52,029 nucleotides of DNA from Neoconidiobolus thromboides FSU 785 (Eukaryota; Fungi; Entomophthoromycota). The notes beneath the pieces are model-generated. The model did no database searches. It worked only from the letters and a program-made list of their open reading frames with translations, and was not told where the DNA came from. This document shows, piece after piece, positions 84 through 36,627 of this stretch. The stretch covers positions 1 through 52,029 of the forward strand of contig MU626398.1 of assembly GCA_025603075.1 (NCBI GenBank). The letters run 5' to 3'. Each line of letters opens with the position of its first letter. Within the stretch, counting starts at the first letter, position 1. The position numbers were made by a program, and so were the translations under genes.

Positions 84-227
84 GGCACTAACAAAATAAT
101 ATTTGATACAAATAATACCATTTTTATTTAAAAAAGTTATTATTTATTATATGAAAAAAATGTTTTTAAAAAATAAAGTTAAAATAATCAAAAATAAGCA
201 TAATTAAGCTTTTTATATTAAATAAGT

Positions 228-326
228 GGGGATGTATTTTTATGTTTAACAATTTTACTAACAAATTTTCCACTTAAATAGTGCTTAAAAAACGGAAAAA
301 GTAATGAAGTCAAAACAAACGCTCCC
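228..326 (+). mobile_element. ~99-bp MITE-like element, copy 1 (TSD AAGT)
   Basis: GGGGATGTATTTT...AAACGCTCCC, flanked on both sides by AAGT (224-227 and 327-330). Confidence 0.85.
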
Positions 327-564
327 AAGTATCTCTTGCTTTTTTTGTATTAATAAAGTAAATGGTTAGGAATGATAGTCAATTGTAAAAAATTATTAAA
401 TCAAAACAAGCTTTAACTTATCAAAATATATTTTTATTATTAAACAAAATATTTTTTAATATAAGTATGAAATTTCATGCTTAATAGTATACACCAATTA
501 AGCAGACTATGTGGCTAAAAAGATCTATGTTGATAATAAATTATAAAAAACTAAAAAACAATAT

Positions 565-663
565 GGGGGTGTTTTTTTTAGTTTCATAATTTTTTCTGTT
601 TTTAAACACTATTTGAGTGGGAAAAAGTTGTTAGTAAAATATTAAGCAAAAAAATACATCCCC
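565..663 (-). mobile_element. ~99-bp MITE-like element, copy 2 (TSD ATAT)
   Basis: Reverse-orientation copy GGGGGTGTTTT...AATACATCCCC, flanked by ATAT at 561-564 and 664-667. Confidence 0.85.
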
Positions 664-1476
664 ATATAATTAAAAAAAAAAGTTTATTGAAATTAATTAT
701 AACAAAAGTTTTAAAAAAGCCATTATATAAAAACTATATTATTAAATATAAATATTAAAATATTAAAATGATATTTTTAGAATTAGGAAATAAAGAACTT
801 TAAATTAATTATATATAAATTTAAAATACATTTAGTTTTAGTAACAAAATCATTCAAATTAACATAAATTTATTGTATAAGTTATAACTAAACTGATTAT
901 AAAAATGCAATTATCTTTATAGCTAGTTTAAGTAATTATAATATAATTAACTATTAAACTAATAGAATGATGCTTTGTAACATTATAAAAAATATTACAA
1001 AAAATCATAAATAAATTAAAAGTAGAGGATGTAGAGCTTTTTATATTTATCCTACATATTACCTTTTTTTATAATAAACATTATTTTTGTTTAACTTTTG
1101 AATTTTATTATCTTTAAATTACTATCATTATTACATTTGCTAAAAAATAACGAAATTACTTATTAGATATTACAATTTATATTTTTTATTTATTTCATAA
1201 AGATTAAACTAAAAAAATTAATAATATTACCAAAGATAGCAAAAGTTATAAAAAATACATCAGTTAAAATAAACCAGATAAAGCAACTCTTTATTAGTAA
1301 TATTAGTAATTTCAATAAAATAAAGAGATGTAACTCAACTTTACTAAAAACATTTTTATTACAAATCCAAAATTAGTTAAAATACTAGCCAAATCGCAAA
1401 GATGAGAAAACTTTTTTAAAAGAGAAGGTTTAAATAAAAATAAGCTAAATAATTAATTCAAATGCCACTTCGAACC

Positions 1477-4146
1477 TTAACTCTTCTGTACCACTGACGT
1501 TTCTAATTTCAAATCCACTTGTCTCACTTTTTCTTCACTTTCTTTATCTCCCTTCATCCTCACTCCACTTTCATCATTACCAACTATTGCTTCAATTTCA
1601 CTCCCATTATACTGACCCATCTGCCTCTGCCTACTTGACTTTTTCCTAACTGGTGTATTTTTTTTAATTATATGGGTTGCTGTTGCAATATTTGTTTTAT
1701 AAACTGAGCTCCTCTTATTGAAGCCTTCATTTAATTTATCTGTGCCCATATCGTCATCGATTTCCGATTGCATTCGATTGGTTTGGTATTCATTATAAGT
1801 CTTTTCTTTTTTTTCTCTCTTCTTTCTTACAGGAACAACGATATGGGACTGGGTGTGTGGGATCCTTGGTATTTTATCGTTAGAATTAGAGGAGGGTAGC
1901 TCAGTAGAATATTTTTTATTATAGGGAAATGGTAAGGATTGTCTTTTGTTGTCCAAAGTTTGATGTGAAATACGGCGCGAGATCTTCAAATCTAAATCGG
2001 AGAGATCACTGGTCCTTCTAGGGTCTAAAGTGGTGCTCGTCCTCAGCTTTAATAGCTGCTCTTTATTTATGAAGGAGGATAGCGGTCGGTCATCTTCATC
2101 TTCATTTTTCTCATTTTTCTCATTCTTCTTCAAAGGTCTTATTTTTGTTTTTAGTTTCCTTTCTGGGGTTTTTCCTTGTGTTTTTTCTTGTGTTTTTTCA
2201 GTATGGGTTAATATTTCATTTAAATTTTCCTCTAAGTCATTGTTTTTAATTTTCTTCTCAGTTATTCTTCTTATCACAATGGGTGGCTCTGTGGGCGGAG
2301 GTGGTAGAGATATTGTTGGCTTAGGTGGTAATATTTGATTGACCTCATCTAAACCAGGAGTTGTAAAGTTATCGTTATCAACGATTATTTCCTCTTCCAT
2401 TGTTTCGCTTATTTGGCTTTCATCTCTTATTTCTGTTAAATTAGTTTCATTTGATATTAATAATGATTCGCTTAAAATATCCTTATTTATCACCTCTTCT
2501 TCCATTTGATTTATTACTTGTTCACTTTGGTCTATTTTTTTATTACCTTCATCCTCTTCCTTATTCATTCTTTCGCCATTGATCATTAATAAAGGAGATG
2601 CTAACGATTCCCCTATATCGTTTTTAGCCGTCAAATCCTTGATGTGATTGTTTCCATTCACTTGCTTATCAATTTCTTCATTCAAATACCGATCTTCTTT
2701 GGATTCATTTAAATCAAAATTCTGATAACTTTCGCCAAGCATATCTTCAGGCGTAAGTGCTGCTAACTCAGAGTCAATATCAATCGATAGTACTGAATTT
2801 TGGTCTTCATAGTCTATTGATTCAACTTCCTTTATTTGATTCCTAAATTTGTTAGCTTCTTCCCTTGTGAAACTTATGTATGGCTCCGCATCTAAATCTT
2901 CTGGTTGTAAATTGGCTAGTTCTGAATCAATATCTGGTAAGTCTAAACCTGCTTCTAAATCTAAGTTTAATTCATCGCTTTCTTGATTGACATTTTCTTC
3001 TTTTTGTACGTTTGGTAGAGGCAGAGAAAAAGAGGATGAAGAGGGTGATAATGCCCTTGGTGATCCTGAGTTGATTTCCGGTGAAAATAAGCGACTTCTT
3101 AATTCAGCTCTAGAATTATGATCCTTCGGCGAACTTGATGGTAGTGAGTTTAATGAGTGTATGCTTTTTGGAGAAACACTATGTTCATTATTGCCTTGCG
3201 GCAGTCCTCTAAGCGAAGAAAACTTGACATTACTTTTTTTATCCCCATTCAATGCCTCTCTATCCTCTATCATAATTGTTGGTTTATTACATGTTTCACT
3301 AACTACCGGCATTAAATTCAATAGTTCGTTTTCAGCCAACCCAGAGTCTTCTTCTTCCTCTTCACAATTTAACCATTCCTCCGAACTGCGTTCTATTGAA
3401 CTCGAGCGGGGCTGCTTCGGACTCGATTTTGAACTAAATTTAAATAAATCACGTACAAAGTTATAAGAATCTGAACGTCGCTTCTCTTTGCCTTTTTTTG
3501 AGCCTATAGAATCCATCGACCGCCTTCCGCTTTCGTTAGCGGAACTATACTCCAGCTCTGAAGTGGCACTCGAGGTCAGAGAAGTAGTTGAGGCATGCCT
3601 TGGTGAATATGGGCAAGTTTCTAACAACGCTTGAGAAGCGTTTTTTTTGAACCAGTTTAATACTTTATCCAAATGCTTCACCCTGCCCTCCAGTGTATCT
3701 TTATCTGTCTGTAATTGGCTAACCAAAGTATCTTTGGTTTGTACCACTTTTTTCAAGGCGTCCACACTTAGTTTGCAATGCAATAATTCTCGCTTGAAGT
3801 GCTTATTTTGTTCGGTTAAGTAATAATTTTCAATCTCTACCTTTTCCAAGGATACCTGATTTGGTAAAACCTCCGGTAAAGCATTATCCGATGAAGCATT
3901 GGATAATACAGAATTAGGACTCTTTAATGGAGATGGTAGAGACCTGGCCGGTGATAAAGGTGAAGATATCTGGGGGCTGGTTGGTGAATTTATTGGTGAT
4001 GTGATTAAATTGGCACTGTCTCGATTGATATCTTCATTTAATAATGTTTTTAACTGTTTTTCAAATTGGGGGTCAAATGTCTTTGAATTATCTTTCTTTT
4101 TGTCTTTTCCTATACCCATTTTAAGCTTTGACATCTTAAAGGTCAT
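1477..4146 (-). CDS. Hypothetical ~889-aa low-complexity protein with an N-terminal coiled coil
   Basis: Uninterrupted 902-codon ORF whose first ATG is at 4146 (MTFKMSKLKMG). S/E/K-rich and disorder-like, with a heptad segment YYLTEQNKHFKRELL...LDKVLNWFKK. Probable 5'UTR intron 4167-4213 (GTAACT...TTTTAG). No family recognised. Confidence 0.8.
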   Translation of the reverse strand: MTFKMSKLKMGIGKDKKKDNSKTFDPQFEKQLKTLLNEDINRDSANLITSPINSPTSPQISSPLSPARSLPSPLKSPNSVLSNASSDNALPEVLPNQVSLEKVEIENYYLTEQNKHFKRELLHCKLSVDALKKVVQTKDTLVSQLQTDKDTLEGRVKHLDKVLNWFKKNASQALLETCPYSPRHASTTSLTSSATSELEYSSANESGRRSMDSIGSKKGKEKRRSDSYNFVRDLFKFSSKSSPKQPRSSSIERSSEEWLNCEEEEEDSGLAENELLNLMPVVSETCNKPTIMIEDREALNGDKKSNVKFSSLRGLPQGNNEHSVSPKSIHSLNSLPSSSPKDHNSRAELRSRLFSPEINSGSPRALSPSSSSFSLPLPNVQKEENVNQESDELNLDLEAGLDLPDIDSELANLQPEDLDAEPYISFTREEANKFRNQIKEVESIDYEDQNSVLSIDIDSELAALTPEDMLGESYQNFDLNESKEDRYLNEEIDKQVNGNNHIKDLTAKNDIGESLASPLLMINGERMNKEEDEGNKKIDQSEQVINQMEEEVINKDILSESLLISNETNLTEIRDESQISETMEEEIIVDNDNFTTPGLDEVNQILPPKPTISLPPPPTEPPIVIRRITEKKIKNNDLEENLNEILTHTEKTQEKTQGKTPERKLKTKIRPLKKNEKNEKNEDEDDRPLSSFINKEQLLKLRTSTTLDPRRTSDLSDLDLKISRRISHQTLDNKRQSLPFPYNKKYSTELPSSNSNDKIPRIPHTQSHIVVPVRKKREKKEKTYNEYQTNRMQSEIDDDMGTDKLNEGFNKRSSVYKTNIATATHIIKKNTPVRKKSSRQRQMGQYNGSEIEAIVGNDESGVRMKGDKESEEKVRQVDLKLETSVVQKS

Positions 4147-4497
4147 CTTCAAATTCTTATATAAGGCTAAAACGGGAGTGAGCAACGTTATATGGGGATG
4201 TAGTTAAAGTTACCTGAGTGAAAAGATGAAAAAGGCTGACTGAATTAATTAGTAAAAATGAACTCTTGCCTTTCTTGGTTTAAATTCAAAATGAACTAAA
4301 CTGTTGAAGTTTATTAAAAATGATTGGTTCAGCCCGATCATTAGTGATTAAATTGTTTTTTTTATGAAATTTTTGGTGGATTTTTGGTTATTGGCGGGTG
4401 TTTTTTTAAAAATTCCAAATGAGTGGCATAAAGTTTTAACATTTTGAATCTTAAATGTTTAAAGTTTAAATCAATATAACACTTTTAAAAGCCATAT

Positions 4498-4589
4498 GGG
4501 GGTGTTTTTAGTTTCATTAATTTTTCGATCTTTAAGCGCTAGTTAAGTGGAAAAGCTATTAATAAGATTCTTACAAAAAATACATCCCT
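4498..4589 (-). mobile_element. MITE-like element, copy 3 (degenerate)
   Basis: ATAT|GGGGGTGTTTTTAGTTTCATT...AAGCGCTAGTTAAGTGGAAAA...AAATACATCCCT|ATAA; the right TSD is imperfect. Confidence 0.8.
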
Positions 4590-4855
4590 ATAATATACTT
4601 TCATCGCTACTGGAATTTTTGAAAATGTAAATGCACTGTTTTTTAAAACAAATTAATTGTCCAAGCCTAAGTCTTTTGAAAAAAAATATTAATTGTAAGA
4701 TATTTTAGGAGGACTTCCACTCATTATCAATGATAATAAATAAAAATACCCTTATCCTAGTACATTATCTATTTTATTGTTTTTCTCTTTAGTAAAGCTT
4801 TTAGAGAAAGAAGCATAAGTTTTTACATTTTGCTAACTTATCTTTATTATTATAT

Positions 4856-4947
4856 GGAGTGTTTTTGACTTCATCACCTTTTTATCTCAAGTGCTATTTG
4901 AGCGGGAAAATTGTTAGTAAAATTCTCAAACACAAAAATACATCCAC
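4856..4947 (-). mobile_element. MITE-like element, copy 4 (TSD ATAT)
   Basis: ATAT|GGAGTGTTTTTGACTTCATC...GTGCTATTTGAGCGGGAAAA...AATACATCCAC|ATAT. Confidence 0.85.
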
Positions 4948-5663
4948 ATATGCTTATAATTTATAGTGTTTAAATAATAATAAAATAAAGTATAACATCC
5001 TAAAAAATCATCATCAATTATTATGAATCGGGCTAGATTTCAAGCTATTTAATTTTAATAAAAGTAAATAAAAAATCATTAATTTATAATTATATAAACA
5101 TTTCTATATACATTGAAATTTAAAAGTTGTTTTTGATTTATCCTTCTCAAATGTTAATTTTAACATATTTAGTGTTGTACACTATTATAAAAAAGCTTTT
5201 TAAATATAAATTAAGATGATTTTTTGGTTTTATCTAACTAATAATCATTTATATAGTATAAAGTTGCAACAAACTATTACTAAATATAAGATTTTTTAAA
5301 CCAATTGTATATTTGAATTTAAGATCTTGATCATTTTTATACAATATAAAATTCAAAAACAATAATTGAATTTTTAACAAAAAACACATATGAATTTTCA
5401 GTATAGAAAAAATTACTAAAAACATCTAGACAGCCTTTGACAGTGTTAAATTGCTTTTAATACCCTCCCCCAGTTAGCAGGGACTTGTTAGGACTACTAT
5501 ACTATGTAGCCATTTTAAGTTCTGACTATTTTATGAATTTTTCTGAAATTTGCGATTCAAATTCAGCTATAAATTATTTCCATTTTATTGTGTCTTAAAA
5601 TTTTCGTCATTTTAATAACTCAATTTTTTATTTACTTTAGCTTTAGATCAACAAATACTTTAA

Positions 5664-7758
5664 ATGATGAGTACAGTTAATAACCATGAAGTTTTAGATG
5701 GATCCAATAAAAATGTTGATATATGGTCTTCAATTTTAGACTCGGTTGCCCTTACTAAAATAACTCCGGTTAAAAATGTGTTCTTGTTAGGTAATATAAT
5801 TTACATTTATAATTGCTTAATAGCTTTAAATGAGTATCTGATTGTTATTAATGATGGTTGCTTATGGGACTTTAGTGACTTTAGCTACTTGGTTTAAATT
5901 AATACATAATAAATAAGGTTATTTATATAATTAAATAGGAGAACCAAACTCCGGAAAAACCACCTTTTTGAATTTTATGAAACATGAAAGTCGGGTTAGA
6001 GATAAACCTGTTACTAAAGGAGACCAGATTTTAAATACATATGAAGATGCCCCAGCCACCACTTCTGAAGAAGATTTTTTTAAATATTTAGATAAAAACC
6101 CAGCATCAACAAAATTAGCATATACACACTCATTTGTTGAACTAAAAGATGAAGAGTCAGATGGTAATTGATTATTTAAACCAAAGTTCATAACAATTAA
6201 TTTTAAAAGATACAATGGCGAGATTGAATTTATATCAGCTGTCAGAACATGACCCCAAGTTACATGAACTTGTCAATTTAAGCTTGAATTATCACACGTA
6301 TAAAGATTCTATTGCTTTGATCTTCTTAGACTGGTCAAAACCTTGGGAGTTTATAAATCAGCTCATCAAATGGTTAAGAGTTTTAGAGATAGCTTATTAT
6401 AATGCTTTAGACCATGGAGGTGATCCTCGTACTATAAATGATCCAAATAGATGGACTCAAGGAATTGCACATTTGGATGAATTAAAAGAAAGATGTAATT
6501 CAATCATTATTTTTAAATGAAATCTTTATTTATTTATTTGTCTAGTGGAGCTATTTTTAAGCGAATCAAAAGAACAAAGTAAAACCCCCCAACCTGATAA
6601 TGGAGAGGAAAGCAATGATACAAAAACTAATAATGGCTCTTTAATTCCTGAAGGATGCCTTACTAGGAATCTTGGGCTTCCGATTTTTATAGTTTGCACA
6701 AAGGTATTTATATATTTATAATAATATTATTTATTGATTTCAATAGTCAGATAAAATTAAACAAGTGGTTCGAGATGCTGAGCTAAGCGAGAGACATTTT
6801 GATTTTATTCAACATTCACTCAGGGCTGTTGGGTTGATGTGTAATATTAGTCTTAATTGTTTTAATCTTTAAACTGACCTTTTTAGATGGTGCTAGTTTG
6901 ATTTATACATCTACTCTTCGCCCAGATTCATTTTCCTTATTGAGAAATTACCTTTTATACCGCCTGTTTTCTGTAACAATATCCAATACGAATCAAAGTA
7001 CAGATCCTTCTAATACTCAAGCACCTTCTACCTCCATCCTTCCATCCTATTTAAATCATTTTAAAGTAAAAGGACGTTTTATGGAAAGAGAAAGAATATT
7101 TATACCAAGTGGATGGGATTCTTATAACAAAATTCGGATCTTAGATTCTAACTTTGATTGTGAAGCAGTTCAAGAAGGAACTGCGATTGACCTTTACAAT
7201 GAACTTTCATCACATCTTCCAGCTCATCATTTAGCTAAAGTGAAAAAAGAGGAGGATGAAGAAGAAATTATGTCTTTTAATGAAGCTTTTTCGTCAATGA
7301 TACCACTTCCCTTTTCATCAAAAAATGTAAGCTTGATATATTGATAAAAATTGACCTAACTCTTTTTTAGAAAGATTTGGAAACTTCTTATATTATTCCA
7401 GAACCTGAGCAACAATTTTTGGCTGCTCATTATGCTATGTTCCAAGGACTTGATTCTTCTAATTTTTTCAAAAGTCAAATGCCATATGTTGGTACCGTAG
7501 GAATGGTTGGAAAAGGAGAGCATACTGTAAGGATTAATTTAAAAATATTCATGCAATTATTAATATTTGTTTAGAATACCACTGAGTCAAAAGTAAGAAT
7601 ATCATTTTTTTATAGTTAACAGAATCAAAGCTTAAAACCTAAATAATATATAAAATTTAAATTTTATTTTTTAGGTTGATACAGGTACAACAGAAAGCGC
7701 AGCTTCTGGGAATTCCTTCTTCAAAATGTTAGCTATGAAAGATAGTTCTAATAATTAA
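5664..7758 (+). CDS. DYN3: Cytoplasmic dynein light intermediate chain (9 exons)
   Basis: Spliced by hand: 5664-5790, 5939-6163, 6210-6494, 6546-6703, 6747-6840, 6887-7326, 7371-7526, 7575-7592, 7675-7758, all with GT-AG introns and consistent phases. DLIC motifs: IWSSILDSV, GEPNSGKTT, FLDWSKPW, PEGCLTRNLGLPIFIVCTKSD, YGASLIYTS, IFIPSGWDSYNKI, and C-terminal NSFFKML. Confidence 0.92.
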
Positions 7759-8403
7759 AAAAGTTAGCATACATAACTTAGCATACATTTTATTGGATGC
7801 GCGATATTTTGATTCATAAAAATTAATTATATAAAGTGGGGTATATAAAATCAGTAACTTGGTTTCAGTTTTTTTTGTAATAAGTTTAAATTATTTTTAT
7901 AATTGTTCATAAAGCCTTATATAATGTTTAAGTTTTATTTAATCATAAATTAATATATTGATATAGTTTTAGTAATCTTTACTAATGAAATATTGTGTTA
8001 AGTAATTCTTACAATGAGAACATATTCCCTGTTCAGTATGTCCACTTTTAATGTAGACTAAAATTTTAAAAATTCATTAGTTAAGTTTAGAATGAAAAAA
8101 CATGGCTACATTTTGGAGCAGATATTTCTGAATATGAAGAGTAATATTTTAATTAACATGGTCTTAAATGAACTTCTTAAAAGTAACTACAACTGAGTTA
8201 ATTGAATTTCATCTAGTAGAGACCTTTTCAAAAGATTGACGATAGCTATTAAAAGTGATACATAACTCAAGTTGTAAATTAGACTCAAACAGGAATAGAA
8301 TTTTAATTGCAAATATTAAGAGTTAAAATTGTTTGTCGTAATTAGTCCGGTTTTAAATCATTGAAAAATTAAGTTCTATTTTTGAAAACTTTTATTTTTT
8401 AAA

Positions 8404-11388
8404 ATGTATTTGAAAGACCAAATTAATGAAAGAAAAGTCAATGAGATAATAACAATAAATAAGTAACTAGCTTTAAATATAAAGATGTTTAAATTAACTG
8501 ATTTGTATTAGTTTTGATTGTTTATTTAAAAGGGAGTTGGCAGCAATAAAATTCAATTTTGAAAAGGTCCATTTGGAAGATATACTGATTAAAGTCAACG
8601 AATTAAAGGTAAATCCTATGATACTAATCCCAGTTATTTTTTTAATGTTAATATTATATTCAGCAATTAAATCATCCAATATTCAATCAAATAATTGATA
8701 TTATTGTTTGTAAACAAAGTAATCTGTTAAGCCAATTTCATTATGTTTAACTTAATCTTTATCTATAGATAACCAAATAATAATTATACAAGAGTATAAC
8801 AATTGTAATGACGAGAATACCAAAGAAAAAAATTTAATATCGATTAATAATGAAATTGAAGAAGAAGAGATTAAAAAGATAAAACTATTATTTTTTCAAT
8901 TAATTAATGGCATTTCGTATTTAAAAAATATCAATATTATTTCCTTTATTGGTAACTTGAATCCTAAAACAATCTATCAATACAAACTAAATATTATAAA
9001 TGATAATAATAGCGAGGTAATCTAATGATAACATGATACTTGTATTTGCTAATTATATTTATTCAAGTAGTATTTAATTAAATTACCCTATTTTTATCTA
9101 AACTATTTATCTAATAATGGATTATTATTCAATTATGAGCATACGTAACTAAATTTATTAAATGCAATTAAAAGCTGACTAACAGTTAAATAGGGATTTA
9201 TATTATTGTTCGCCAGAATATTTAGTAAGTATATTAAGAGAAGAAAAGACTATTATATTGGATGAAAGAGTAAGTATATTATATAATACTATCATGTTTA
9301 GAACTAACTAATAAATAAATAGAGTGATTTATGGAGTATAGCTATAGTTATAATTGAAAAGATATTGAGAAAGGAAAAGATTATTCAAGACTATCTAATT
9401 TATCACAAAAGTCAATCAATTACTACTATCCAAGAATATTTTGTACAATTACTAAACTTGTTAAAAGATAAAGAGGAATATCAACTGTTTATACAATTCA
9501 TTGAAAATAAAATAGTAAATATAAATAATGAAAAGAATAAGTTATTGGAATTTTGGTCAATTATTAAACCATTATTGAATTTAGATGTTAATCATCGTAC
9601 TTCAATCAACTCGTTAATAACATCTAATTATTTTGCAAATTTCAGATTAAAGTTATTACAATTTGATTTGTATTGTAATGAAATTGAGTATTATCAAAAG
9701 AATGGATTAAGTAAGGACTATAATACCAATTTAATAGCATTAAGTGAAGCTTATTATCTATTCAAAATTAATAACAATGACAATAATAATAGTAATTATA
9801 ATAATTCAATTGAAGACAAAATACAATACTGCACAATAAATAATAATGAAATGAATAGTAAAGAGTATAGAATCATACAGTTAGTTAATAAGGAAATTGT
9901 CATAAACAATGATGATAATGATAATTATAAAAAGAACGATTTTTTATTCTTTAAGTTGAATACAACATTTGATGTCAATAATACTAATTCAAGGACCTTA
10001 ATAAAATACAAAAAGTTAATACTAGAATATCCAAAGAGTGCGTCAATAATTAAGCAAGAATATTACAATAACAATCAACAGGAAGAGTTGATTAAAAAAT
10101 ATTATTGTGGAAGATTATGGGCCAGTTTGTTAAATATCAACAAGGATTTTGAAACGGAATATTTTAATCTAATAAAATATTTACCTTTTTTAGAGGAAAA
10201 GCAAATTTTAATGGATCTACCAAGGTGCCATAATTATCATGCTTTGTTAAACTCAAAGCTCGGTCAATTGAAACTAAAATCCATTATCAAGTCTTTCCTA
10301 TTCAATAATCCTAATTTCGTTTATTGGCAAGGTAATATTAATAATAATACTATGATGTGAATAGTATTATTTACTATTTATATAGGTTTAGATTCAATTG
10401 CAGCTACATTTTTAACTATTAATTATATGGAAGAAGCAATAAGTTATAAGAGTATGGAGCAGTTTATTAAAAAGTATTTAAGCAATTTATTTTTAAAAGA
10501 AAACAATCAAATATTAAATGAAAAAATGGATCAGATGGAATTATTATTGAAATATTTGGATCCTACTTTGGCTAATCATCTATCTCATATTGAATTAGAG
10601 CCTAAATTTTATTCGGTTTCTTGGTTCCTTACTTTATTTACTCGTAAATCTTATTATTATTACTATTTTTATACATATTAATAATTTATTTAGATGTATT
10701 TCCATTTGATAAGATTTATCAACTGATTAGTAATATCTTAAAATATGACCCAGAATATACAATCTATTTAGCCAGTACAATATTAATTTATTACAAAAAG
10801 AAATTACTAAAGAAGAACTTTAATGAAGCAATTCATTTATTTTCTAATAATTTAAAGGACTTAGATTTAGGTTGGATATTAACTCAGTCTACGTATTATT
10901 ATGATAAGTATTTGATTACGTTTCACAATAATATTCAAAATCAAAATCAATTTTTACCTTTTAATCCAGAACTACCTTTCCTAGATTTATCCGATTTAAC
11001 CCTTCCAACTATTAACAATAATAACATTTCACAATTAGAATATCTACTACTTGATTGCAATAAAAGTGTTGCATTGAATAAAGATAAAGAAACAATGGTT
11101 GAACAGCCTGTACATTATAAAAATAGCATTATCTATGATCCAGAGGATGATTTAATTAGTCTAATTAAGTTTTTAAGTTTCAAAAGTAAACTTAAGACTG
11201 TTATCTTAAGTAATGATTTAGAATATTCTACTAATTTGATTCATCATTTAATCAAACACCAAGTACCTTTCGTTGGTTTACCTTTAGCCTTACCTCAAAA
11301 TTGTAATTGTAATCCTGGCTTCATTGGGGGTTCTGGGGCTAAAAAGGAAAAGCCAAATGGCTTTAAATCCTTATTTTGTACCTGTTAA
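8404..11388 (+). CDS. TBCK: TBC1-domain-containing kinase-like protein (pseudokinase + Rab-GAP TBC + rhodanese-like)
   Basis: Spliced 5' exons 8404-8462, 8512-8608, 8664-8718, 8769- are in phase. Kinase-like segments: ELKQLNHP, FFQLINGISYL, YYCSPEY, SDLWSIAIV. TBC motifs: ILMDLPRCH, YWQGLDSI, FYSVSWFLTLFT, HVFP. C-terminal rhodanese-like region LLLDCN. Internal exon boundaries are approximate. Confidence 0.82.
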
Positions 11389-11442
11389 AAATGGAAAATA
11401 AAAATTCACCATGTTTGTTATTTAAGATTTTAAATAGTATAT

Positions 11443-11541
11443 GGGAGTGTTTTTTTTGGCTTCATAACTTTTTCCATCTTTTAAACGCTATTTGAGTGGA
11501 AAAATTATTAGTAAAATTCTTAAATACAAAAATACATCCCC
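11443..11541 (-). mobile_element. ~99-bp MITE-like element, copy 5 (TSD ATAT)
   Basis: ATAT|GGGAGTGTTTTTTTTGGCTTCAT...ACGCTATTTGAGTGGAAAA...AATACATCCCC|ATAT. Confidence 0.88.
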
Positions 11542-11800
11542 ATATCTTTTAAATTTCATGTTATATAGGAAGTGAGCAAATGAACAAAACAAAAAATAAA
11601 GTTCAAAGTATCTTCGATTAGTTCTTTATCTTTAATATGTTTATCGTATATCTAAATGTTTTTAGAGGTCTGCATCTAAATTCATGTTGCCCCTCTTATT
11701 ACTGTGACTGATATCTTATTCACTTAAACTCAGTTGATCAATTCCTTCTTACTACCAACTTTTCGTTTATTTTTTCAACAATTCAGTTATCCTGATTTAG

Positions 11801-16053: not shown

Positions 16054-16516
16054 TATTTTTTTATTTATTTATTATAATAAAAACAAGAAAAAAAAATGAA
16101 CTTTGAATTTTTCAATTTAACTTGTAATTAATTTTCATTGGTAAATTAAATTTGAAGTTTGTTAAATGAAATGATTTAAGACAATAATAATACATTTAAT
16201 AAACATACATATATATTATCACCAAGCGTTAGTATTTTACTATGCAATGAAAAAGTAGCACTATATTATAGTAGAGATGAAAATAATATAGGTCTTTATC
16301 CAATTTAAGTATTTTAAAATTAAAATTAAAATAATTTTAAATTAAAATGAAACTACTATTAAGGAATAAACAAATAAAGAGATATAATTTATCAACACTT
16401 TTATTGATATTACAAGAACACATTTATTTATTTGCATCTTTATTCTGTTAATAACACATATTAATATTATATGCATTCAATATTCATTAATTAAATTATA
16501 AAATATTTAAGGATAT

Positions 16517-16554
16517 GGAGATGTTTTTTTTGGTTTCATTTATTTGTTCATTTT
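16517..16554 (-). mobile_element. MITE-like element, half copy
   Basis: ATAT|GGAGATGTTTTTTTTTGGTTTCATTTATTTGTTCATTTT matches one end of the family, then diverges. Confidence 0.55.
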
Positions 16555-20077: not shown

Positions 20078-20551
20078 CTTATGCTTTCTATTATTATTAA
20101 AAATTAACTTCTTTTAAAAAGGATTATAGTTTTTCAAAAGAAAACTATCTGATAAATAGCAATTTCTTTGTTAAGCCAATAAAATCGAATCAAATTTATT
20201 AGCTAGGAAAAAGCTTAATTATTATTCGAAAATTTGATTGTTGAAATTTATTAATTTCGATAATTATGCTTCACTCACAAATTAGAGAATATTAATGTTA
20301 GAAATTTATAGTAAATTCTAGATACTTAAAAATAAAAATGTCAAAAGCTCTCAGAGCTATTTTTGAACATGGAGATGAGCTCCAATCTTTCAGTTGAGTA
20401 GCAATATGGTGGTATCTATGATACTCGTCCTAAGTTGTATATTTATAATAAAAGCATTTTATCAATCAAAGTATCAACCATTATGTTATTTTATATGTAA
20501 ATGTCTTGAATGTTTAATATTTTATCCATTTTTTTATACAACTTAAAATAT

Positions 20552-20645
20552 AGGGTTATTTTTTTGATTTCGTTATTTTTCCATTTTTTAGGCGCTATTT
20601 GAGTGGAAATATTAGTAAATTCTTAAACAAAAAAATACGTCTCCC
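20552..20645 (-). mobile_element. MITE-like element, copy 6 (TSD ATAT)
   Basis: ATAT|AGGGTTATTTTTTTGATTTCG...GGCGCTATTTGAGTGGAAA...AATACGTCTCCC|ATAT. Confidence 0.82.
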
Positions 20646-21131
20646 ATATGTCCATGTTTTATATATAAATTTGATGATCTTTCAAACTTAAAGGAATTAA
20701 ACCAAGTAGAATATAGCCACTATTACATTTAGTTATTGTATAATGCAACTCTCAATAAAAAGAGTAACCAGATTATATATACTTTTTTATAGGCCAATTT
20801 GATTAATTAGAGTCTTTTTTAGTATAAGCTCCGTTTTATTGAGATACATTAAATGGATTTACTGATAGTATTAAATTTGATTTTATCAAGTTTCATTCAA
20901 TAGAGTTTTTTTGAAATTGTGATTGCTAGAAGCAATATATAATTGACAATATAAAGTCGGCTATAAATAAGGTTCTAATTTTACAGATTCAAAAAATTAT
21001 ATCGCAATAAAATTGCTTAAGATTAAGCCCAAGCCAGTGAAAATAAAAAATAAATATGCTTGGGTAGAACCAAAAGTAAAGTATTTAATAGCCAAATAAC
21101 ACCTTTTAATATATAAAGATAGACTTCTAAA

Positions 21132-21229
21132 GGGGATATTTTTTTTAGGTTCATCATTTTTTCCATCTTTTAAGTGCTACTTGAGCGGAAAAATTGTTAG
21201 TAAAATTCTTAAACAAAAAATACATTCCC
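21132..21229 (-). mobile_element. MITE-like element, copy 7
   Basis: GGGGATATTTTTTTTAGGTTCATC...GTGCTACTTGAGCGGAAAA...AATACATTCCC|ATAT; the left flank (TAAA) does not match. Confidence 0.82.
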
Positions 21230-21892
21230 ATATAGTGTTTCTGATTTTATTTTTAAATAATTTTAAAGTTTTTTGAACAATTAGCATATTTCTATTCCTT
21301 AATGTTTGTACAGTTTAGCTACTACTCATGTCAAATTTTAAAATATTTTAGTTTAGATTACAGTTTTTGTAAAATTTATTAAATTATGTTATTTTTATAT
21401 AATTTTCAAATAGCAACATTTTTACTTTTTTATCTTTTTAAAATTGAATTTAAAATATATAATGAACTTAATTTATGAAAAAATTCAAAATTTTACCCTA
21501 AACTTTAACTCGTAATAAATCATTAAGTAAAGTAACTTCCGAAAACAACAAACTAGATAAGAAACCCCTATCTATCTAATATTACTTTTATGACTATAAA
21601 AGAAATAATTTATATTTCGTTTTTAGAGTACTTGGTTACAAATGACCTTGAAACTCTATTATCCAAACCTGTTCCTTAATTTCTGGAATCAACTTTACAA
21701 CTTCAAATAAATTTCTCCATTTTCTATAACGATTATCCGAATCCACCAATAAACTTTCGCAATAACTAAGCTAAACTTGAATGCTTATTAATCCCAACAA
21801 TAAAAAGAACTAATAAAAATAATATGCAATTTGAACTTAAATTTTGTCCGATAATAATCAACAGCTAATACAATCAATAATCAACCGACGCT

Positions 21893-24563: not shown

Positions 24564-24642
24564 AAAATAAAAAATAGAAAAATATCCAAATAATAAAATA
24601 TAGCCAACATTCTATTCTTTTTTATTTCTTGAATATCTTTTT

Positions 24643-29700: not shown

Positions 29701-31605
29701 ATTAGTGGATTTACGTTCAACATTCACACCAAATTGTTTCATCATAGAAATAGTCATATCAATATAAGGTTGAGATATAACATGACCACCAACTAACTTT
29801 AAGGTTACTCCTTCTTTTGTATAAGGGGAGGATAGCAATATAGAAGATACATATTGAGAAGATATATCAGCAGCTAATTCAATGACCCCTCCTTTTAAAC
29901 CTGAGTTTTTACCAGAAGACTCAAATTTCAATGGAAGACAACCTTCTCCTTCTAAATAATTAATTTGACAACCATTGTCTCTTAATGCATTAACTAATGG
30001 TCCAATTGGTCTTTGTTTCATACGTTCATTACCAGTTAGTATAATAGAACCTTCATCTGCTTTTACTGAAGCACAAATAGTAGTAAGGAATCGAACTGCT
30101 GTACCAGCATTGCCTAAATAAATAGGTTGGTTAGGTACTTTAAAATTAGCTGGACCACCACAACCATGAATAACTAAATTTTCTCCACCATCTTGAAATT
30201 CATATTGTACATTTCCTAATAATCTTAAAGCTTCTAACATGACTTGGGTATCATCCGAATGTAGTAATCCACTTAATTTGATTGTTCCTTCACCTAAAGC
30301 AGCTAATAATAAAGCTCGATTGGAGATGGATTTAGAGCCAGGTACACTAACTTCGCTATATTGTTGACTATCTAAGGTTTCTTTTAGATTTATTTGTATA
30401 CCATAAGACATGGCACGAATTAATTCTTCATCATTAACGAATTCTGGATAGGGATTAGTGGTACCTCCTATTTCTTTTAATAAAACAATTCTCTTTTTAC
30501 CAGCTACATTCTTTTTATCTAACTTAATAATATTCATTAATTTTTCAACATTTAATTGTCTCTGAGAATCACTTAATTTATTTTTTAATATTGAATCATA
30601 AACTGATATTGGCAAATTATATAATTTTAATACTCTACTTAATCTAGCAATAGTAACTTGGTTAATATGCCCTAATGAACGAGCAACTTCAGCTTCTTGG
30701 ATCATACCAATAGAAACACATTCACCATGTAGAAGTGATGGAGATAATATAGCTTCGATGGCATGCCCAATCGAATGACCAAAATTTAGTAAACCTCTCA
30801 AACCACTTTCTTTTTCATCTTCAGTTACTACAAAGGCTTTAAAACGAATAGAACTTAACACTACCTTTTCCAATGCTAATCTGTCCACTTCGTTTACATT
30901 TTCTTTATCTACTACTAACCTTTGAATACTTTCAAACTGCTTTTCTAATCGATTAAATTCTTCTGCATCCGCAATAGCAGCTGTCTTAATGACTTCTGCC
31001 ATTCCATTAAAAAATTCTCTTTTAGGTAATGTTTGTAAATATTTTAAATCCACATATACCCTTAATGGTTGCCAAAAACTACCAATTAAATTTTTACCTG
31101 AAGGCACATCAATAGCTGTTTTTCCACCAATGGAAGAATCGACCATAGCTAATAATGAAGTAGGTAAATGGACTACTGGTACACCTCTCATAAAAGTAGA
31201 TGCCACATAACCTACTAAATCTCCAATAACACCACCACCGAGCCCAAGGAGTAATGTATCTCTGGTACATCCAATACTGAAGAGATAATCTTCGATTTCT
31301 GCTTTATATTTTCTACTCTTACTTTGTTCACCAGGGGATATAATATATTCATAAACCTTAATACCTTTTGGGGATAAGCTATTGCTAAGTTCAGCCTTCA
31401 ATTCAGTTAAATGTAATTCTTTCAAATGAGTATCGGTGATAATGACCAATTTACTGAATTTGGAAATAGTAGGCAATTCATTGGCAATATGGTTGGTAAT
31501 ATTATAACCTAAATGAATACTATCTTTTCCTAGAATAGATACCTTTGTTAAGTTGTTTTGTTTGACGATTGGAGCCAATTGAGTATTTGAAATGGGACTT
31601 AGCAT
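26779..31605 (-). CDS. ARO1: Pentafunctional AROM polypeptide (DHQ synthase, EPSP synthase, shikimate kinase, type I DHQase, shikimate dehydrogenase)
   Basis: Intronless 1608 aa: GGGVIGDLVGY, MVDSSIGGKTA, PGSKSISNRA, RVKECNR, CYDDHRVAMSF, GMRGVGKTT, EIRVD/ASYHD/IVKL, VTIPFK/GYNTDW/GAGGTSRA. Confidence 0.98.
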   Translation of the reverse strand: MLSPISNTQLAPIVKQNNLTKVSILGKDSIHLGYNITNHIANELPTISKFSKLVIITDTHLKELHLTELKAELSNSLSPKGIKVYEYIISPGEQSKSRKYKAEIEDYLFSIGCTRDTLLLGLGGGVIGDLVGYVASTFMRGVPVVHLPTSLLAMVDSSIGGKTAIDVPSGKNLIGSFWQPLRVYVDLKYLQTLPKREFFNGMAEVIKTAAIADAEEFNRLEKQFESIQRLVVDKENVNEVDRLALEKVVLSSIRFKAFVVTEDEKESGLRGLLNFGHSIGHAIEAILSPSLLHGECVSIGMIQEAEVARSLGHINQVTIARLSRVLKLYNLPISVYDSILKNKLSDSQRQLNVEKLMNIIKLDKKNVAGKKRIVLLKEIGGTTNPYPEFVNDEELIRAMSYGIQINLKETLDSQQYSEVSVPGSKSISNRALLLAALGEGTIKLSGLLHSDDTQVMLEALRLLGNVQYEFQDGGENLVIHGCGGPANFKVPNQPIYLGNAGTAVRFLTTICASVKADEGSIILTGNERMKQRPIGPLVNALRDNGCQINYLEGEGCLPLKFESSGKNSGLKGGVIELAADISSQYVSSILLSSPYTKEGVTLKLVGGHVISQPYIDMTISMMKQFGVNVERKSTNEYFIPSSKYINPSTYLVEGDASSATYPLSLAAITGTTVKVNNLGYDSLQGDAQFALNVLKPMGCEVTQTSMTTTVKGPAPGNLICLPQIDMEPMTDAFLTASVLAAVATKHPTDQSTDKFITNITGIANQRVKECNRILAMVTELAKFGVYCEELEDGISIYGTKLSDLKLPVDGIDCYDDHRVAMSFSLIGTQVPGTIIKEKRCIEKTYPGWWDVLRHLLNVPLSGYDIQPHHDIHSNQVDINKSIILIGMRGVGKTTLGEYLADDLGYQFLDLDYEFEKVYKVPVKQLVAEKGWEEFRQLEAQLVKDSFNKYSKNTVISCGGGIVELEENRQLLLEYKKKGGLVLFLKRDINDIETYLNVDSTRPNYSNEESIKDVYLRRLPYYQQCSSHEFVSISKEEVNNNSQQLHFQLVKNQFTKFIQFLQGKIENPVKNINKNSNSFFVCINNSNVKEVLTDLKEIAEGSHAVEIRVDQLIKDKDLNSTNEFQLAKDYIIQQISLLKYELIDYPIIYTLRTINEGGSLPDDLPVNQLLELSELGLRLGCEVIDLQLNFNNQIHQSIQQNKRNSLILASYHDLSGNLEWDTTAVTDLIKKGQSYGDIVKLISTAKDHQYNLKLLTFLNEYYNNKSNTTPLIAINMGEKGKITRVLNPYLTPVTHPKLSSKAAPGQLSSKEILNTQYQLGSLTKKEYYLFGNPISSSPTPQFHTAVFQSLGYPHELHRHQTDDIEKVNNILKQDNFGGSCVTIPFKVQIIPYLDELCPIAKSLGAVNTVIRQNGKLKGYNTDWLGIHDLLSEKLLEINALTKKKSAIILGAGGTSRAAIYALNQLNFETIFVYNRSLERVEELRKEVDENLKFVSIIGQKKLDELIQQDNHNIVTIVDTLPGDSQVVNESFLKQVFKENKGILVKLAYAKYSEGKTSKVENQYGDNIQVVDGLDILIVTARYQTKLWTNGVQPRSEFAKKTMNQIVYGE

Positions 31606-33171
31606 ATTGATAAGTTGATAATGATATAAATAATTGAGGTTATTTTATTTTATTTGTTATTGTATAAATGTGTATAGCTTAATAATCGTCTTTTTTAAAT
31701 AGTCAATAATGACAATTTTGATAAAAAATAATAGGTGAAAAATGATTGCATTTTATAATTTTATAATTTTCTTTTATAGGTGACGAGTTATGAGTAATCG
31801 TTTATTTTTTTAATGTTAAGATTATTGGCTTATGTGAGAATTGTTAGTTTAGCCTTATCTTTAAATTAATTGTTTAAATATGCCGATAAGTGTAGTATAT
31901 TATATTACATTGTATTCTATAAGGTTATATATTATAATTACAATGAAGATTTAGCCTTAACAATTGGATTAAATAATTTTTAATATAATGTTTTTTTTGA
32001 AATCGTTGTTTTTTTTCCATTTAGCCTTATTTTAATACAACAAATGGATAGTATTAGAATACTCAATTAGCTTAGGGAAGTGCTGGATGTAAACTTTTAG
32101 TGGTTTTAAGCGAATTAAAGTTATTGATAAAAGGATGAATTAAGATGGTTGAAAGTTGATAGTATGTTATTATAATAAATAAATATCCTTATAATAACAA
32201 GAAAGTGAACTCTGAGCCATTTATAAAAGAGTTTATTTCTTATTTTAGTAAATTTAATAAAAGGTTAAATATTCGTCTTTTTTGTAATGAGACAAAAGTA
32301 AATGTTAAAGCACTAATAAATGATTGTTGTACGATTGGCTTATTTTTACAATACACTAACTTATTTTATCAATTTTAATAATAAGTATAATAATCGATTT
32401 GGTTAGACATATATCTTATTTACCTCGTATGCCGATTTTAATCTGTATAGCCATTATATCATCATTCTTGTTATTTTAAGTCAAGTTCTGTTGATACAAT
32501 CTCTAATCTCAAACTTTATCACTTCTTAAAGTTGTATCCTCAACTTTTTTTATAAGTATTATAGGCTAAATCTGATATTATAAAAGCTAAATTAAACGAT
32601 TAAATAATGGTTAATAGTTTAGATAAACTAGGATGTCTCAAAAAGATGTTTGATGCGTGGAGACTTCCAGAGGTAAGAAGATTAAAGAAACGCTTTTTAT
32701 GAAAGTGTTTTGATGATTCGATATAGGTTTACATAGGAACTGCTATAAAAGGTAGGTTTTTTTCTTTGTGACGATGATCAAAGATTGTAGAATATATTTG
32801 ATAATGGTCATGCTTTAACCTGCTAATAATGCTACTTTATGATATTATCAATACATTTTCATTTGAGTAAAAAAAATTGTGACGTTAAGTAATAGATAGT
32901 TGAATCATTAATATTAATAAAAACATCCAAAATGTTAACATTGGTCAACTAAAGATAGTTTAATATAAAATTAATAAACCCATGCCATTCAAATTTTAGT
33001 AAAACAATATAATATTATAACTAGCTATTGAGTAGCAATAATTAATTTTATTAATATGAAAATATTAGAGTAGTTGCTAAAACGAAATAGATAGTCTAAA
33101 CAGGTTTTTCATAGCATTGATTTTTTGGAAGTTATTAGCAGTGAGGATATAGATATGTAATATTAAGATAT

Positions 33172-33269
33172 GGGGATGTATTTTTTGTGTTTAAGAGCTT
33201 TCTAATAATTTTTCCGCTCAAATAGTGCTTAAAAGATGGAAGAAGTAATGAAGTCAAGGAAACATCACC
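33172..33269 (+). mobile_element. MITE-like element, copy 8 (TSD ATAT)
   Basis: ATAT|GGGGATGTATTTTTTGTG...CCGCTCAAATAGTGCTT...AAACATCACC|ATAT. Confidence 0.87.
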
Positions 33270-33657
33270 ATATTTTTATCTCAAAATGTTTTCATTTTTT
33301 AATATACATGTTGTTTTTAATATCAAAGGGAGTCGAAAGAGTTAATAACCTACCAAAATACTTTCAACTGACAAATAAAAGTAATTTGAATAACTTAACC
33401 TGAAATAACAAATATTTTTGTAGTTTAATTTTTTTAAAGTTTTATATCACGCATAAGTTGTATTTACTAAAGCTTGATAACTATGCTAAACTCTTATCTA
33501 ATGTAAGATATTTATATTAGGGTATTACAAATCAATCAAAATAGCATAACTATAACTTAAATAAAAACTATATATAAAAAATATTACAATATAAGTAAAA
33601 GCTGATTTAGAAAAGTTAGTAATTTATTTAAAAAAAGCTAATTTTATTATCTCTATT

Positions 33658-33749
33658 GAGGATGTATTTTTAAGAATTTTACTAACAAATTTTCCACTCA
33701 AATAGCGCTTAAAAAACGGAAAAATAATGAAACCAAAAAAAACATCTCG
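33658..33749 (+). mobile_element. MITE-like element, copy 9 (in tandem with copy 10)
   Basis: GAGGATGTATTTTT...CCACTCAAATAGCGCTT...AAACATCTCG|ATAT; the ATAT at 33750-33753 is shared with the next copy. Confidence 0.85.
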
Positions 33750-33753
33750 ATAT

Positions 33754-33851
33754 GGGGATGTATTTTTGTATTTAAGAATTTTACTGACAATTTTTCCACA
33801 TAAATAGCGCTTAAAAAATGGAAAAATAATGAAACTAAAAAAAACAGCCCC
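33754..33851 (+). mobile_element. MITE-like element, copy 10 (TSD ATAT)
   Basis: ATAT|GGGGATGTATTTTTG...AAATAGCGCTT...AAACAGCCCC|ATAT. Confidence 0.88.
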
Positions 33852-34230
33852 ATATCTAGATTTATTATTATCTAGTGAGGAATCAGTACTTAGTGATTAG
33901 AGTCAAAAGCAGTTCTTACTTGATTGGGTAGCCGTAAGTTGAAAGCTCTTGATTTATGTGACTAAGGTAGACTTGAGTTATGAAGAATAGCATGTAATAT
34001 GCTACAGATTATGTAAGACAAATATAATGGATAATACTACTGTAAAATCTACATAAAATGCTAATAGAAAGATTTAATGAGTTTATTAAAGGTGTAATAT
34101 CAAAGAATAAATCAACTAAAAAGCCTCGAGCTATTATGGTGAAGAATCCCTTTTATACTCTACCAAGTATGGATGTCAAAATGAGAGGATAATATCCTTC
34201 GGAATTACATGGCAGAAATTCTCATATCAA

Positions 34231-34313
34231 ATCAAAACAAAAGGCTCGAGATTGATTGTGCCTGGACTCGAGAACACAACGACTTAAGTGATTGTTATGT
34301 TATAGTCAATCAT
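34231..34313. repeat. Dispersed repeat, copy 2; partner at 1-83
   Basis: About 87% identical to 1-83 by manual alignment. Confidence 0.85.
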
Positions 34314-34348
34314 AAAGTTGACAAAGCGATATTTCACAACTTATATAC

Positions 34349-34446
34349 AAAGGTGTTTTTTTGGTTTCATTACTCTTTTTATTTTTTAAGTATTATTTAA
34401 ATAGAAAGATTATTAATAAGATCATTAAATAAAAAAATACATCTTC
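34349..34446 (-). mobile_element. MITE-like element, copy 11 (heavily decayed, head-to-head with copy 12)
   Basis: AAAGGTGTTTTTTTGGTTTCATTAC...AAGTATTATTTAAATAGAAAGATTATTAATAAG...AAAATACATCTTC is colinear with copy 5, with many G>A/C>T changes. Confidence 0.75.
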
Positions 34447-34450
34447 ATGT

Positions 34451-34549
34451 GGGGATGTATTTTTGTGTTTAAGAATTTTACTAACAAATTTTCCGCTTAA
34501 ATAGTGCTTAAAAAATGGAAAAAATAATGAAGTCAAAAAAAACACTCCC
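34451..34549 (+). mobile_element. ~99-bp MITE-like element, copy 12 (TSD ATGT)
   Basis: ATGT|GGGGATGTATTTTTGTG...CCGCTTAAATAGTGCTT...AAACACTCCC|ATGT (34447-34450 and 34550-34553). Confidence 0.9.
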
Positions 34550-36627
34550 ATGTATTAACTAATTATTCTTTTGATTATATTTGTTTCTGTCATTTCCATT
34601 TTTATTGTTGTATATAATTTATTAATAAATATTTCATTCTCATAATACTTTATTTTTATTATGCTTTGTCTTTGTAAATTGAAATTTATTTTAATTATAT
34701 AACTCAAAGTTTATCAGTTATCAGCTTTATCCAAAATTATACTATTGCATATAATAGTTGTTTTCAAATAAAAACATAATATTCTATTATGTAAATAAAA
34801 TTTAAACAATATGTATATTTTCAGTTTTTTATTATAAAAAGCTTTTTACTTTTTTAGCTATATTAAAGCTTTTATATTATAAGTAAACAAAATAGTCTCA
34901 TATTTCTTAAATTAAATATGCACGTCCAATATTAAAATATAGTTAAAAATATTACAAACAAAAGTAGAGTATAAAGTGCTATAAAATCAAATATAGATCA
35001 AATAGGCCTTTTAATTCAAAAAGTTATAATAGTAAATAAAAACTACCATATAAACCCATATGTACCTGCATATTATATACAATTCTATAAATAAAACTTA
35101 GTAATCAATTATAGTTGAATTTTATATGATTTTCAATTTTCAATTTTACTTTTTATTGCTGTTTACTTAATACAATCTTGTTTAACATCATTAGTTATTA
35201 AAGAATTATAAAAATATAATATTTTGTAGATTAATACATACAAGTTTAAAATTAAATAATTTTAAAGTGTTTAAATTGACTATAGAATATTTCCTAAAAT
35301 AAAAAAGATTATTTTCTTTAAATTAGCTTCTAAACCTATTAAAATAAATTACTGATAAGCAAACTGATAAAACATTATATTCGTTTATAGCTATTTCCTA
35401 AAACTCATTATCAAATATTTTGTTTATATTATATGATTTAGTTGTTTGCTTTTTATCATACAACTATAACGATAAGTTTATCCAAGTAGTTGGTATTAAA
35501 CTTAAAACGTTGATAAAATATAAATCAATTTAATCTAAAGATAAAAATTAAGATAATAGATATCTTTCAATGTTTTTATTTTTATCTTTTTTTTGAAAAA
35601 TCAAGTTAAACAGCATATTGGGAATTTATTAAATTATAAATAGATATTGTTTTAGCAAAAAATCATCGGATATATTTTTCCTGTTATTTTCATTAGATGA
35701 TATAATTCTAGTAATCTGTAAGGGATACAAACCCTTATCATTTTCTTTTTAAAAGGAAGCATAAACCATAGTTTGATTGTACTGAATGATGAAATAGTTG
35801 GTGTTTTTTAAGGGATGGAATTTACTATCTTTCAAAGATAAGATCCTTATTTTTTATAATTAAACTATAAACTAATTAGTATACTATTAACAGTAATAAA
35901 ATAAATAAAACAGCATATATTTTATATGAGAGAGAGTAAAACCATTTTATTAATAAATTCGGATTATTGTATAATGTCCTTCTTTTTAACTGAGGTATAA
36001 TTATAATTAATTCACGATAATTATCTATTTTTTTCGGTTGAAATTGATTCACCCCTGTAATCTGGAAAAATAAGAATGATCTTGTTATTGGCTTAAACTA
36101 ATACAGATATCCTCTTTTTTCCCACGGTCATACTCCTAATAGTTACTTAGTCTATGCAAAAGCCAATAATTAGCATTGACTTTATTATTAAGGGAGGACA
36201 ATCAAGTTACGAAAAAGTCCAATTAAATACGATAGATGGATCATTTATTACAAATCAGCAATCGCCACTTGATCATTTTCAGATATGATTGGTGGATCCG
36301 AAAAGATAAGATTTAACTTAAATTTTTGTGGTGGAGTTTGTATTCATTCACTAAATCAATTAAAATAACTAAAGGATGGTTGGTTATTCCTTGAATGACG
36401 GAAATAGGCCAATTAAATCTAAACTGCCTTAAGGGATATTATGATGAAAAAAATTTCCCACGGTAAAAAGTATAAAAGGATGGCTATAGTCATCTTGTTA
36501 CCCTTGATTAAATTAACAGGATATTCAATTACACATTTTTTAAAAAAGTATCAAACTTTTAATTTTATTTACTCAATCGTAGCAGATAATTCAATCTTTA
36601 TTTTTTTATTTTATTTTTATATAAACA

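Follow-up and report, generated by a model that had tools for sequence, protein, structure and literature searches.

Among DNA transposons, piggyBac and Kolobok elements target TTAA, and Ginger elements end in TGT...ACA. MITEs (miniature inverted-repeat transposable elements) that duplicate TA, of the Tc1/mariner type (Stowaway-like), include guest from Neurospora, which measures 98 bp, and mimp from Fusarium. For Sola1 and the MITEs derived from it, PMC3845634, citing Bao et al. (2009), gives as hallmark a 4-bp duplication with outer A and T (AWWT for Bombyx, AWDT for Rhodnius), along with terminal inverted repeats (TIRs) that begin with GG. In fungi, a survey of cut-and-paste transposons that counted transposase-bearing copies and not MITEs found Sola in Rhizophagus irregularis and as single occurrences in Dikarya (PMC5751038). 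No Sola was present in the Zoopagomycota sampled in that survey (two Basidiobolus, two Conidiobolus, and one Kickxellomycotina genome), and Neoconidiobolus thromboides was outside the sample. Here, we analyzed scaffold MU626398.1 of N. thromboides (assembly GCA_025603075.1), whose complete sequence of 52,029 bp is referred to below as the window, and describe a MITE family with a 99-bp consensus that is dispersed along it. We found no published description of this family in the literature, and a full-text search combining Sola and Conidiobolus gave nothing relevant.

In the window, this one repeat family amounts to 12 full copies of 91 to 102 bp and one 38-bp half copy. Repeats were grouped into direct and inverted families by a find_repeats-type approach, and the copies were then searched for with nhmmer, using a single sequence and subsequently a profile hidden Markov model built from the aligned bodies. 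Both searches recovered the same 12 copies, with profile E values from 1.5e-26 to 2.8e-15, and five simulated control windows (first-order Markov, same composition) gave 3, 0, 0, 0, and 0 matches at E<=10. The half copy (16517-16554) was missed by nhmmer at E<=10; it corresponds to consensus positions 1 to 38 and reached a local alignment score of 46, the best of 1,500 random window segments scoring 33. These counts agree with those of an earlier reading of the same DNA (the original prediction), which had also described the family as very small; this is the case, although the measured bodies spread slightly wider than the 92 to 99 bp then claimed. Seven of the full copies lie on the plus strand and five on the minus strand. 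The majority consensus is 99 bp long, and the copies are 72 to 92% identical to it and 62 to 93% identical to each other (median, 75%). Deviations from the consensus comprise 104 transitions and 49 transversions. The range of identity to the consensus and the predominance of transitions indicate a family of mixed ages, mostly old.

With the G-run and the C-run taken as the element boundaries, the body is adjoined by perfect direct repeats of 4 bp in 8 of the 12 copies and of 5 bp in none. Read in the orientation of the element, six copies have ATAT, one has ACTT (plus strand, AAGT), and one has ACAT (plus strand, ATGT). ATAT is found on both sides of copy 2 (561..667, body 565-663, 99 bp, plus strand; nhmmer score, 68.7 bits), copy 4 (4852..4951, body 4856-4947, 92 bp, plus; 73.0 bits), copy 5 (11439..11545, body 11443-11541, 99 bp, plus; 88.6 bits and 92% identity to the consensus), copy 6 (20548..20649, body 20552-20645, plus; 64.1 bits), in which the first G of the G-run is an A, copy 8 (33168..33273, body 33172-33269, 98 bp, minus; 77.4 bits), and copy 10 (33750..33855, body 33754-33851, 98 bp, minus; 81.1 bits). 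Copy 1 (224..330, body 228-326, 99 bp, minus; 86.5 bits and 89% identity to the consensus) is flanked by AAGT at 224-227 and 327-330, and copy 12 (34447..34553, body 34451-34549, 99 bp, minus; 87.7 bits) is flanked by ATGT at 34447-34450 and 34550-34553; both pairs are as had been predicted, as is ATAT at most other copies. The flanks of the remaining four copies are imperfect. Copy 3 (4494..4592, body 4498-4588, 91 bp, plus; 66.9 bits and 75% identity to the consensus) has ATAT on the left and a degenerate right flank (TATA/ATAA), and the flanks are TAAA and ATAT, unmatched, in copy 7 (21128..21233, body 21132-21229, 98 bp, plus; 78.4 bits) and TATT and ATAT in copy 9 (33654..33753, body 33658-33749, 92 bp, minus; 71.2 bits). 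Copy 11 (34345..34450, body ~34345-34446, plus; 52.4 bits), the oldest of all, has a decayed left end and ATGT on the right. The half copy (16513..16554, plus) consists of ATAT followed by the truncated body.

Within the window, two 4-mers at such a spacing are identical by chance with a frequency of 0.009, which is far exceeded by the eight perfect repeats in 12 copies and bears out the earlier claim of a true flank duplication; the next four positions outward agree at chance level only. In all eight intact copies, the fourth base to the left of the body (L-4) is A and the fourth base to its right (R+4) is T, with A and T each accounting for ~35% of the window. Also in these copies, T always precedes the G-run and A always follows the C-run. 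Since ACTT/ACTT and ACAT/ACAT are not palindromic, these flanks are a duplicated target and not part of the element, to which the palindromic ATAT could belong. A 4-bp A-N-N-T target site duplication (TSD) is the simplest reading of these data. Copies 1 and 12 are mutual nearest relatives (93% identity) and are among the four copies nearest the consensus. These two copies, which are the sole ones with duplications other than ATAT, also have diagnostic bases in common (GACTTCATTA, AAGCACTATTTAAG); they may represent a young subfamily with a looser choice of target.

Two pairs of copies are nested. On the plus strand, copy 9 is followed by ATAT (33750-33753), copy 10, and another ATAT, which makes a head-to-tail dimer in which the right flank of copy 9 is the left flank of copy 10. 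Likewise, copy 11 is followed by ATGT, copy 12, and a second ATGT, making a tail-to-tail pair. Each pair has exactly one 4-mer in common, and the younger members (copies 10 and 12; 92% and 91% identity to the consensus, respectively) occupy and duplicate the 4-mer that flanks the older ones (copies 9 and 11; 87% and 72%). Such a duplicated flank is what a 4-bp stagger at A-N-N-T predicts, and the element's own flank is thus a good target. The nesting also lends indirect support to mobility of the family. An open reading frame (ORF) spanning the dimer had no matches in a protein search.

The TIRs of the family are imperfect and measure ~15 bp (5'-GGGRRTGTWTTTTT at both ends), close to the ~16 bp first proposed. 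The consensus ends read GGGAGTGTTTTTTTTG and, from the opposite end, GGGGATGTATTTTTGTG, and 12 of the first 15 positions are complementary. Inside the element, there is a further inverted pair (TTTTTCCA...TGGAAAAA). A search of the window for solo termini returned only the half copy at 16517. Stop codons interrupt each of the three frames of the consensus strand. Signs of an RNA gene were sought as well: there was no Rfam match and no tRNA gene, and the fold energies of three copies, with z values of -2.2, -0.2, and +0.9 relative to shuffled sequences, were inconsistent and at best weakly better than those of the shuffles. All of this speaks against an RNA gene. Outside the species, one 25-base word of the family had no match in metagenome contigs, and the loci reached with shorter words (6 in metagenomes and 5 viral) all failed to match the MITE profile.

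None of the 13 copies overlaps a gene in the annotation, compared with an intergenic share of 37% of the window, in agreement with the original prediction that all copies are intergenic and occur in both orientations. Under random independent placement, this outcome would have a P value of ~3e-6, a figure that is made too small by the clustering of the copies. Nine of the 13 copies are located in three divergent promoter regions and the rest behind 3' ends, including copy 5, which begins 55 nt past the stop codon of a TBCK-like ORF. Presence between genes only is the usual picture of selection purging genic insertions. Taken together, the family shows the features of MITEs, namely, a homogeneous length below ~800 bp, no coding capacity, TIRs, a TSD of fixed length, and a high copy number. 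These features, along with insertion in both orientations, nesting, survival between genes, and copies in the thousands, identify it as a MITE family, an ordinary kind of non-autonomous class II element.

The abundance of the family was assessed in contigs (Logan) of four DNA runs, X1 to X4, which were aligned on 31000-36999; the runs contain 70 to 96% of the sampled words of this segment. Between 8,570 and 15,147 contigs aligned per run (15,147 in X1). The word depth of unique sequence was ~446, 28, 44, and 47 in X1 to X4, respectively, and that of the bins with MITE copies was 1.8 to 2.7 million (X1), 130,000 to 200,000 (X2), 186,000 to 298,000 (X3), and 188,000 to 289,000 (X4). The resulting ratio is ~4,000 to 7,000 per 200-bp bin, or ~6,000 to 9,000 once corrected for the share of the bin that is MITE; being derived from summed contig depth, these ratios indicate an order of magnitude and not a count of copies. 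A depth of ~6,000 to 9,000 times that of single-copy sequence indicates genomic copies in the thousands. This agrees with the density in the window, one copy per 4 kb, over 25 to 29 Mb, so that the four runs back the earlier extrapolation from this density to thousands of copies. In 4 of 4 runs, the unmatched contig flanks, which come from thousands of other copies, have a consensus of ...ATA before 34450 and of AT... behind 34551. The majority flank genome-wide is thus ATAT at both ends.

Copies 8 (33172-33269), 9 (33658-33749), and 12 (34451-34549) each contain contig ends from all four runs, and these insertions are therefore common to the samples. Differences between the runs in 31000-36999 are overwhelmingly transitions. 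The X4 sample looks heterozygous or heterokaryotic: it has two haplotypes, with many sites showing an alternate letter at half depth, and one haplotype differs by 14% from the window over 32485-32879. One X4 contig (record 26; depth, 23) extends into copy 8, as do contigs of X1 to X3. Another (record 27; depth, 24.5) aligns over 32485-32879 and resumes exactly at 33270, being 98 letters shorter than the window; the body of copy 8 is 98 bp long. It is thus probable that one X4 haplotype is without this copy, representing an empty or excised site. In this search for empty sites, short-read contigs break inside copies and cross-copy matches swamp the signal, and copy 8 in X4 was the only usable case.

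The duplications found in the window (six ATAT, one AAGT, and one ATGT) are of the 4-bp AWWT type described for Sola1 (PMC3845634). Two groups of transposons are excluded by the flanks: (i) piggyBac and Kolobok, since no copy is flanked by TTAA, and (ii) Tc1/mariner/pogo elements with strict TA, since the flank centers are CT/CT at 228-326 and CA/CA at 34451-34549. As A-N-N-T matches the Sola1 hallmark and users of TTAA and of strict TA drop out, Sola1 is the best available reading, and a Sola label, taken from the target signature, is plausible.

The whole account that we favor, and that we hold to be on balance probable, is that of a MITE with a 4-nt stagger at A-N-N-T, mobilization in trans, and a Sola-type partner. 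Each copy would be a non-coding unit of 99 bp derived from a cut-and-paste DNA transposon. The transposase, with its gene elsewhere in the genome, would bind the imperfect TIRs and excise the element, and insertion would occur at A-N-N-T, mostly ATAT, by a presumed 4-nt staggered cut, with repair producing the 4-bp duplication. As every insertion would provide two new ATAT sites, later copies would land in the flanks of older ones; the head-to-tail dimer (33658-33851) and the tail-to-tail pair (34345-34549) would have arisen in this way. In this account, the family expanded to thousands of copies that survive between genes only, are mostly old, and are common to the four samples, with at least one copy that looks polymorphic. 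The partner would be a Sola-type (Sola1-like) DDD transposase, proposed from the target signature alone.

A number of points weigh against this account. (i) Non-palindromic flanks are found in only 2 of the 12 copies, so the choice between a 4-bp and a 2-bp duplication depends on few data. (ii) The X4 segment beside 33172-33269 is too diverged to align, so it is no more than probable that the 98 absent letters are those of the MITE. (iii) The Repbase rule for non-autonomous elements asks for TSDs of equal length and tolerates no more than one mismatch when positions 1 to 11 are aligned (PMC4455052); over these terminal bases, agreement with the single Sola1_NA terminus compared (GGACCGTTTAT..., PMC3845634) is limited to 4 of 11 positions, leaving more mismatches than the rule allows. 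(iv) There is no transposase in the window, where the eight longest ORFs match no transposase family and no intergenic ORF of at least 60 amino acids looks coding.

Given a true 4-bp duplication, the partner might instead belong to a Ginger2/TDD-like, a Chapaev-like, or an unclassified lineage, which we judge to be rather unlikely. GGG...CCC ends combined with ATAT, ACTT, and ACAT fit neither the TGT...ACA ends of Ginger nor the TTAA of piggyBac and Kolobok. The poor agreement with the Sola1 terminus nevertheless speaks for such a partner, as does the fact that the superfamily is read from the target signature; in addition, Ginger2 MITEs likewise prefer a 4-bp target composed only of A and T, TATA (PMC3845634).

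Another alternative concerns the duplication itself. The element could measure 101 bp and read 5'-TGGG...CCCA-3', with a 2-bp duplication that is mostly TA and CT or CA in two copies, a preference for targets preceded by A and followed by T, and a non-Sola partner, such as a relaxed Tc1/mariner/pogo, an ISL2EU, or a Mirage-type element. The T before the G-run and the A after the C-run in every intact copy are complementary and could belong to the TIR, and an empty site would read A-N-N-T under the 2-bp and 4-bp models alike. However, the 2-bp model needs an extra assumption to account for L-4 being strictly A and R+4 strictly T, a pattern that the 4-bp model, which is therefore more economical, explains in all eight intact copies. 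Moreover, two non-TA duplications among 10 are far too many for Tc1/mariner/pogo, of which TGGG termini are also atypical. We thus regard a 2-bp duplication as improbable. The original prediction had held that a true 4-bp TSD rules out Tc1/mariner; the duplication and the loss of strict TA were borne out, although a 2-bp reading with T...A termini is formally compatible with the data. Finally, it is scarcely credible that the copies are functional rather than mobile, for example as small RNA genes, regulatory modules, or protein-binding sites dispersed by some other route, because, although their confinement between genes and the nine copies in divergent promoter regions would suit this, they occur in both orientations and in thousands at 62 to 93% pairwise identity, with inverted ends, duplicated flanks that vary among copies, nested insertions, no Rfam match, and no consistent fold.

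If the MITE reading with a Sola1-type partner is carried to the genome level, the family could be the non-autonomous arm of a Sola1-type system in Zoopagomycota, with ~6,000 to 9,000 copies in a compact genome of ~25 to 29 Mb, variable between haplotypes, so that it may be active and may have rewired many promoters. We offer this combination tentatively, as possible but doubtful in its entirety. Were it true, the family would make up 2 to 3% of the DNA, about one copy per intergenic region, in a group of fungi from which Sola was previously unreported. A comparative paper on Entomophthorales describes N. thromboides as having a mostly non-repetitive genome, with 13.5% repeats, and makes no mention of MITEs or Sola (PMC11105155). 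Thousands of 99-bp copies would be a sizeable and so far undescribed part of this repeat fraction. The copies are also a likely cause of assembly breaks, as Logan contigs end inside them, and, with positions almost only in promoter and terminator regions, they could affect gene regulation. If the partner is Sola, a rare superfamily known to date among fungi from Rhizophagus and single cases (PMC5751038) would gain in host range, and a short, well-defined substrate for the study of Sola transposition would be at hand; otherwise, the result is one of routine transposon annotation.

The scaffold itself has a G+C content of 21 to 38%. Its annotated genes are ordinary housekeeping ones, namely, those for ARO1, ACC1, DLIC, Tim44, EI24, ribosomal proteins, a Nop14-like protein, and a Fungal_trans factor. 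The host is an entomophthoralean, insect-pathogenic fungus. The ARO1 protein is the sole member of its cluster, and its closest relative, from Massospora, shares 51% identity; a protein search with the Fungal_trans gene matched only itself. These protein searches thus led to no second N. thromboides locus, and a search for contigs encoding the proteins gave the present scaffold only. At 8404-11388, the assembly gene table gives just an 81-amino-acid product (8404-8698), and long ORFs (331 and 158 amino acids) run on to 11388; the TBCK-like gene at this place seems to be under-annotated. An intronless ORF of 889/902 amino acids at 1477-4185 on the minus strand is bracketed by four MITE copies. 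It matches no Pfam family, and its predicted structure is of very low confidence (pLDDT, 0.41). Its product is probably an intrinsically disordered, lineage-specific protein. As a candidate for the autonomous partner, the 902-amino-acid ORF was rejected, being disordered and without transposase features.

Two further repeats were noted in the window. A separate 319-bp foldback at 50905-51223 is made of two 104-nt arms that are 97% complementary and spaced by 111 nt; its ends (CCATTTCAAAAAACTTAACAC...) are unrelated to the 99-bp MITE, and it may be another MITE, with long TIRs, or a palindrome in the promoter of a 103-amino-acid gene. A second dispersed repeat is present at 5-104 and 34235-34334, with 82% identity between both copies, and extends over ~33990-34340. 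Its contig depth is ~50 to 110 times that of unique sequence, and 20 to 30 variant contigs per run map there. The similarity stops at ...GATATTT, and the scaffold begins inside this repeat. The idea that it is the 3' end of a mobile ORF, and hence a lead to a transposase, was unsupported: among 1.84 billion proteins searched, its 50-amino-acid frame matched only three unrelated repeat proteins, i.e., two TPR proteins and one cytochrome-b5 repeat protein, at 32 to 44% identity.

Compared with known elements, the family resembles the TA-duplicating guest and mimp type of MITEs in its size of ~100 bp, its short TIRs, its AT-rich targets, and the TA at the center of most flanks. Unlike these, it has CT or CA at the center in two of ten intact copies, duplicated on both sides, and a repeat that spans 4 bp in all intact copies. 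Ginger2 elements differ from it in their TGT...ACA termini, as opposed to GGG...CCC here. The non-autonomous Ginger2 elements share with it a target of four A/T bases, which is TATA in their case and ATAT/A-N-N-T in the present one (PMC3845634). Likeness to the Sola1_NA MITEs of Bombyx mori, Rhodnius prolixus, and Heliconius (PMC3845634) is found in the outer A and T of the 4-bp duplication (AWWT/AWDT there; ATAT, AAGT, and ATGT here), in TIRs that begin with GG and include a T-rich stretch, and in the high-copy, non-coding, AT-rich nature of the elements. In contrast, those MITEs measure 194 to 709 bp (99 bp here) and have TIRs of 28 to 36 bp (~15 bp here), the agreement of terminal bases is the 4 of 11 given above, the host here is a zoopagomycete fungus, and the present family is known from MITE copies alone. 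With the fungal Sola elements surveyed previously (PMC5751038), the family would, if the label is right, share membership of this rare superfamily, here in a fungus that is likewise early-diverging by lineage.

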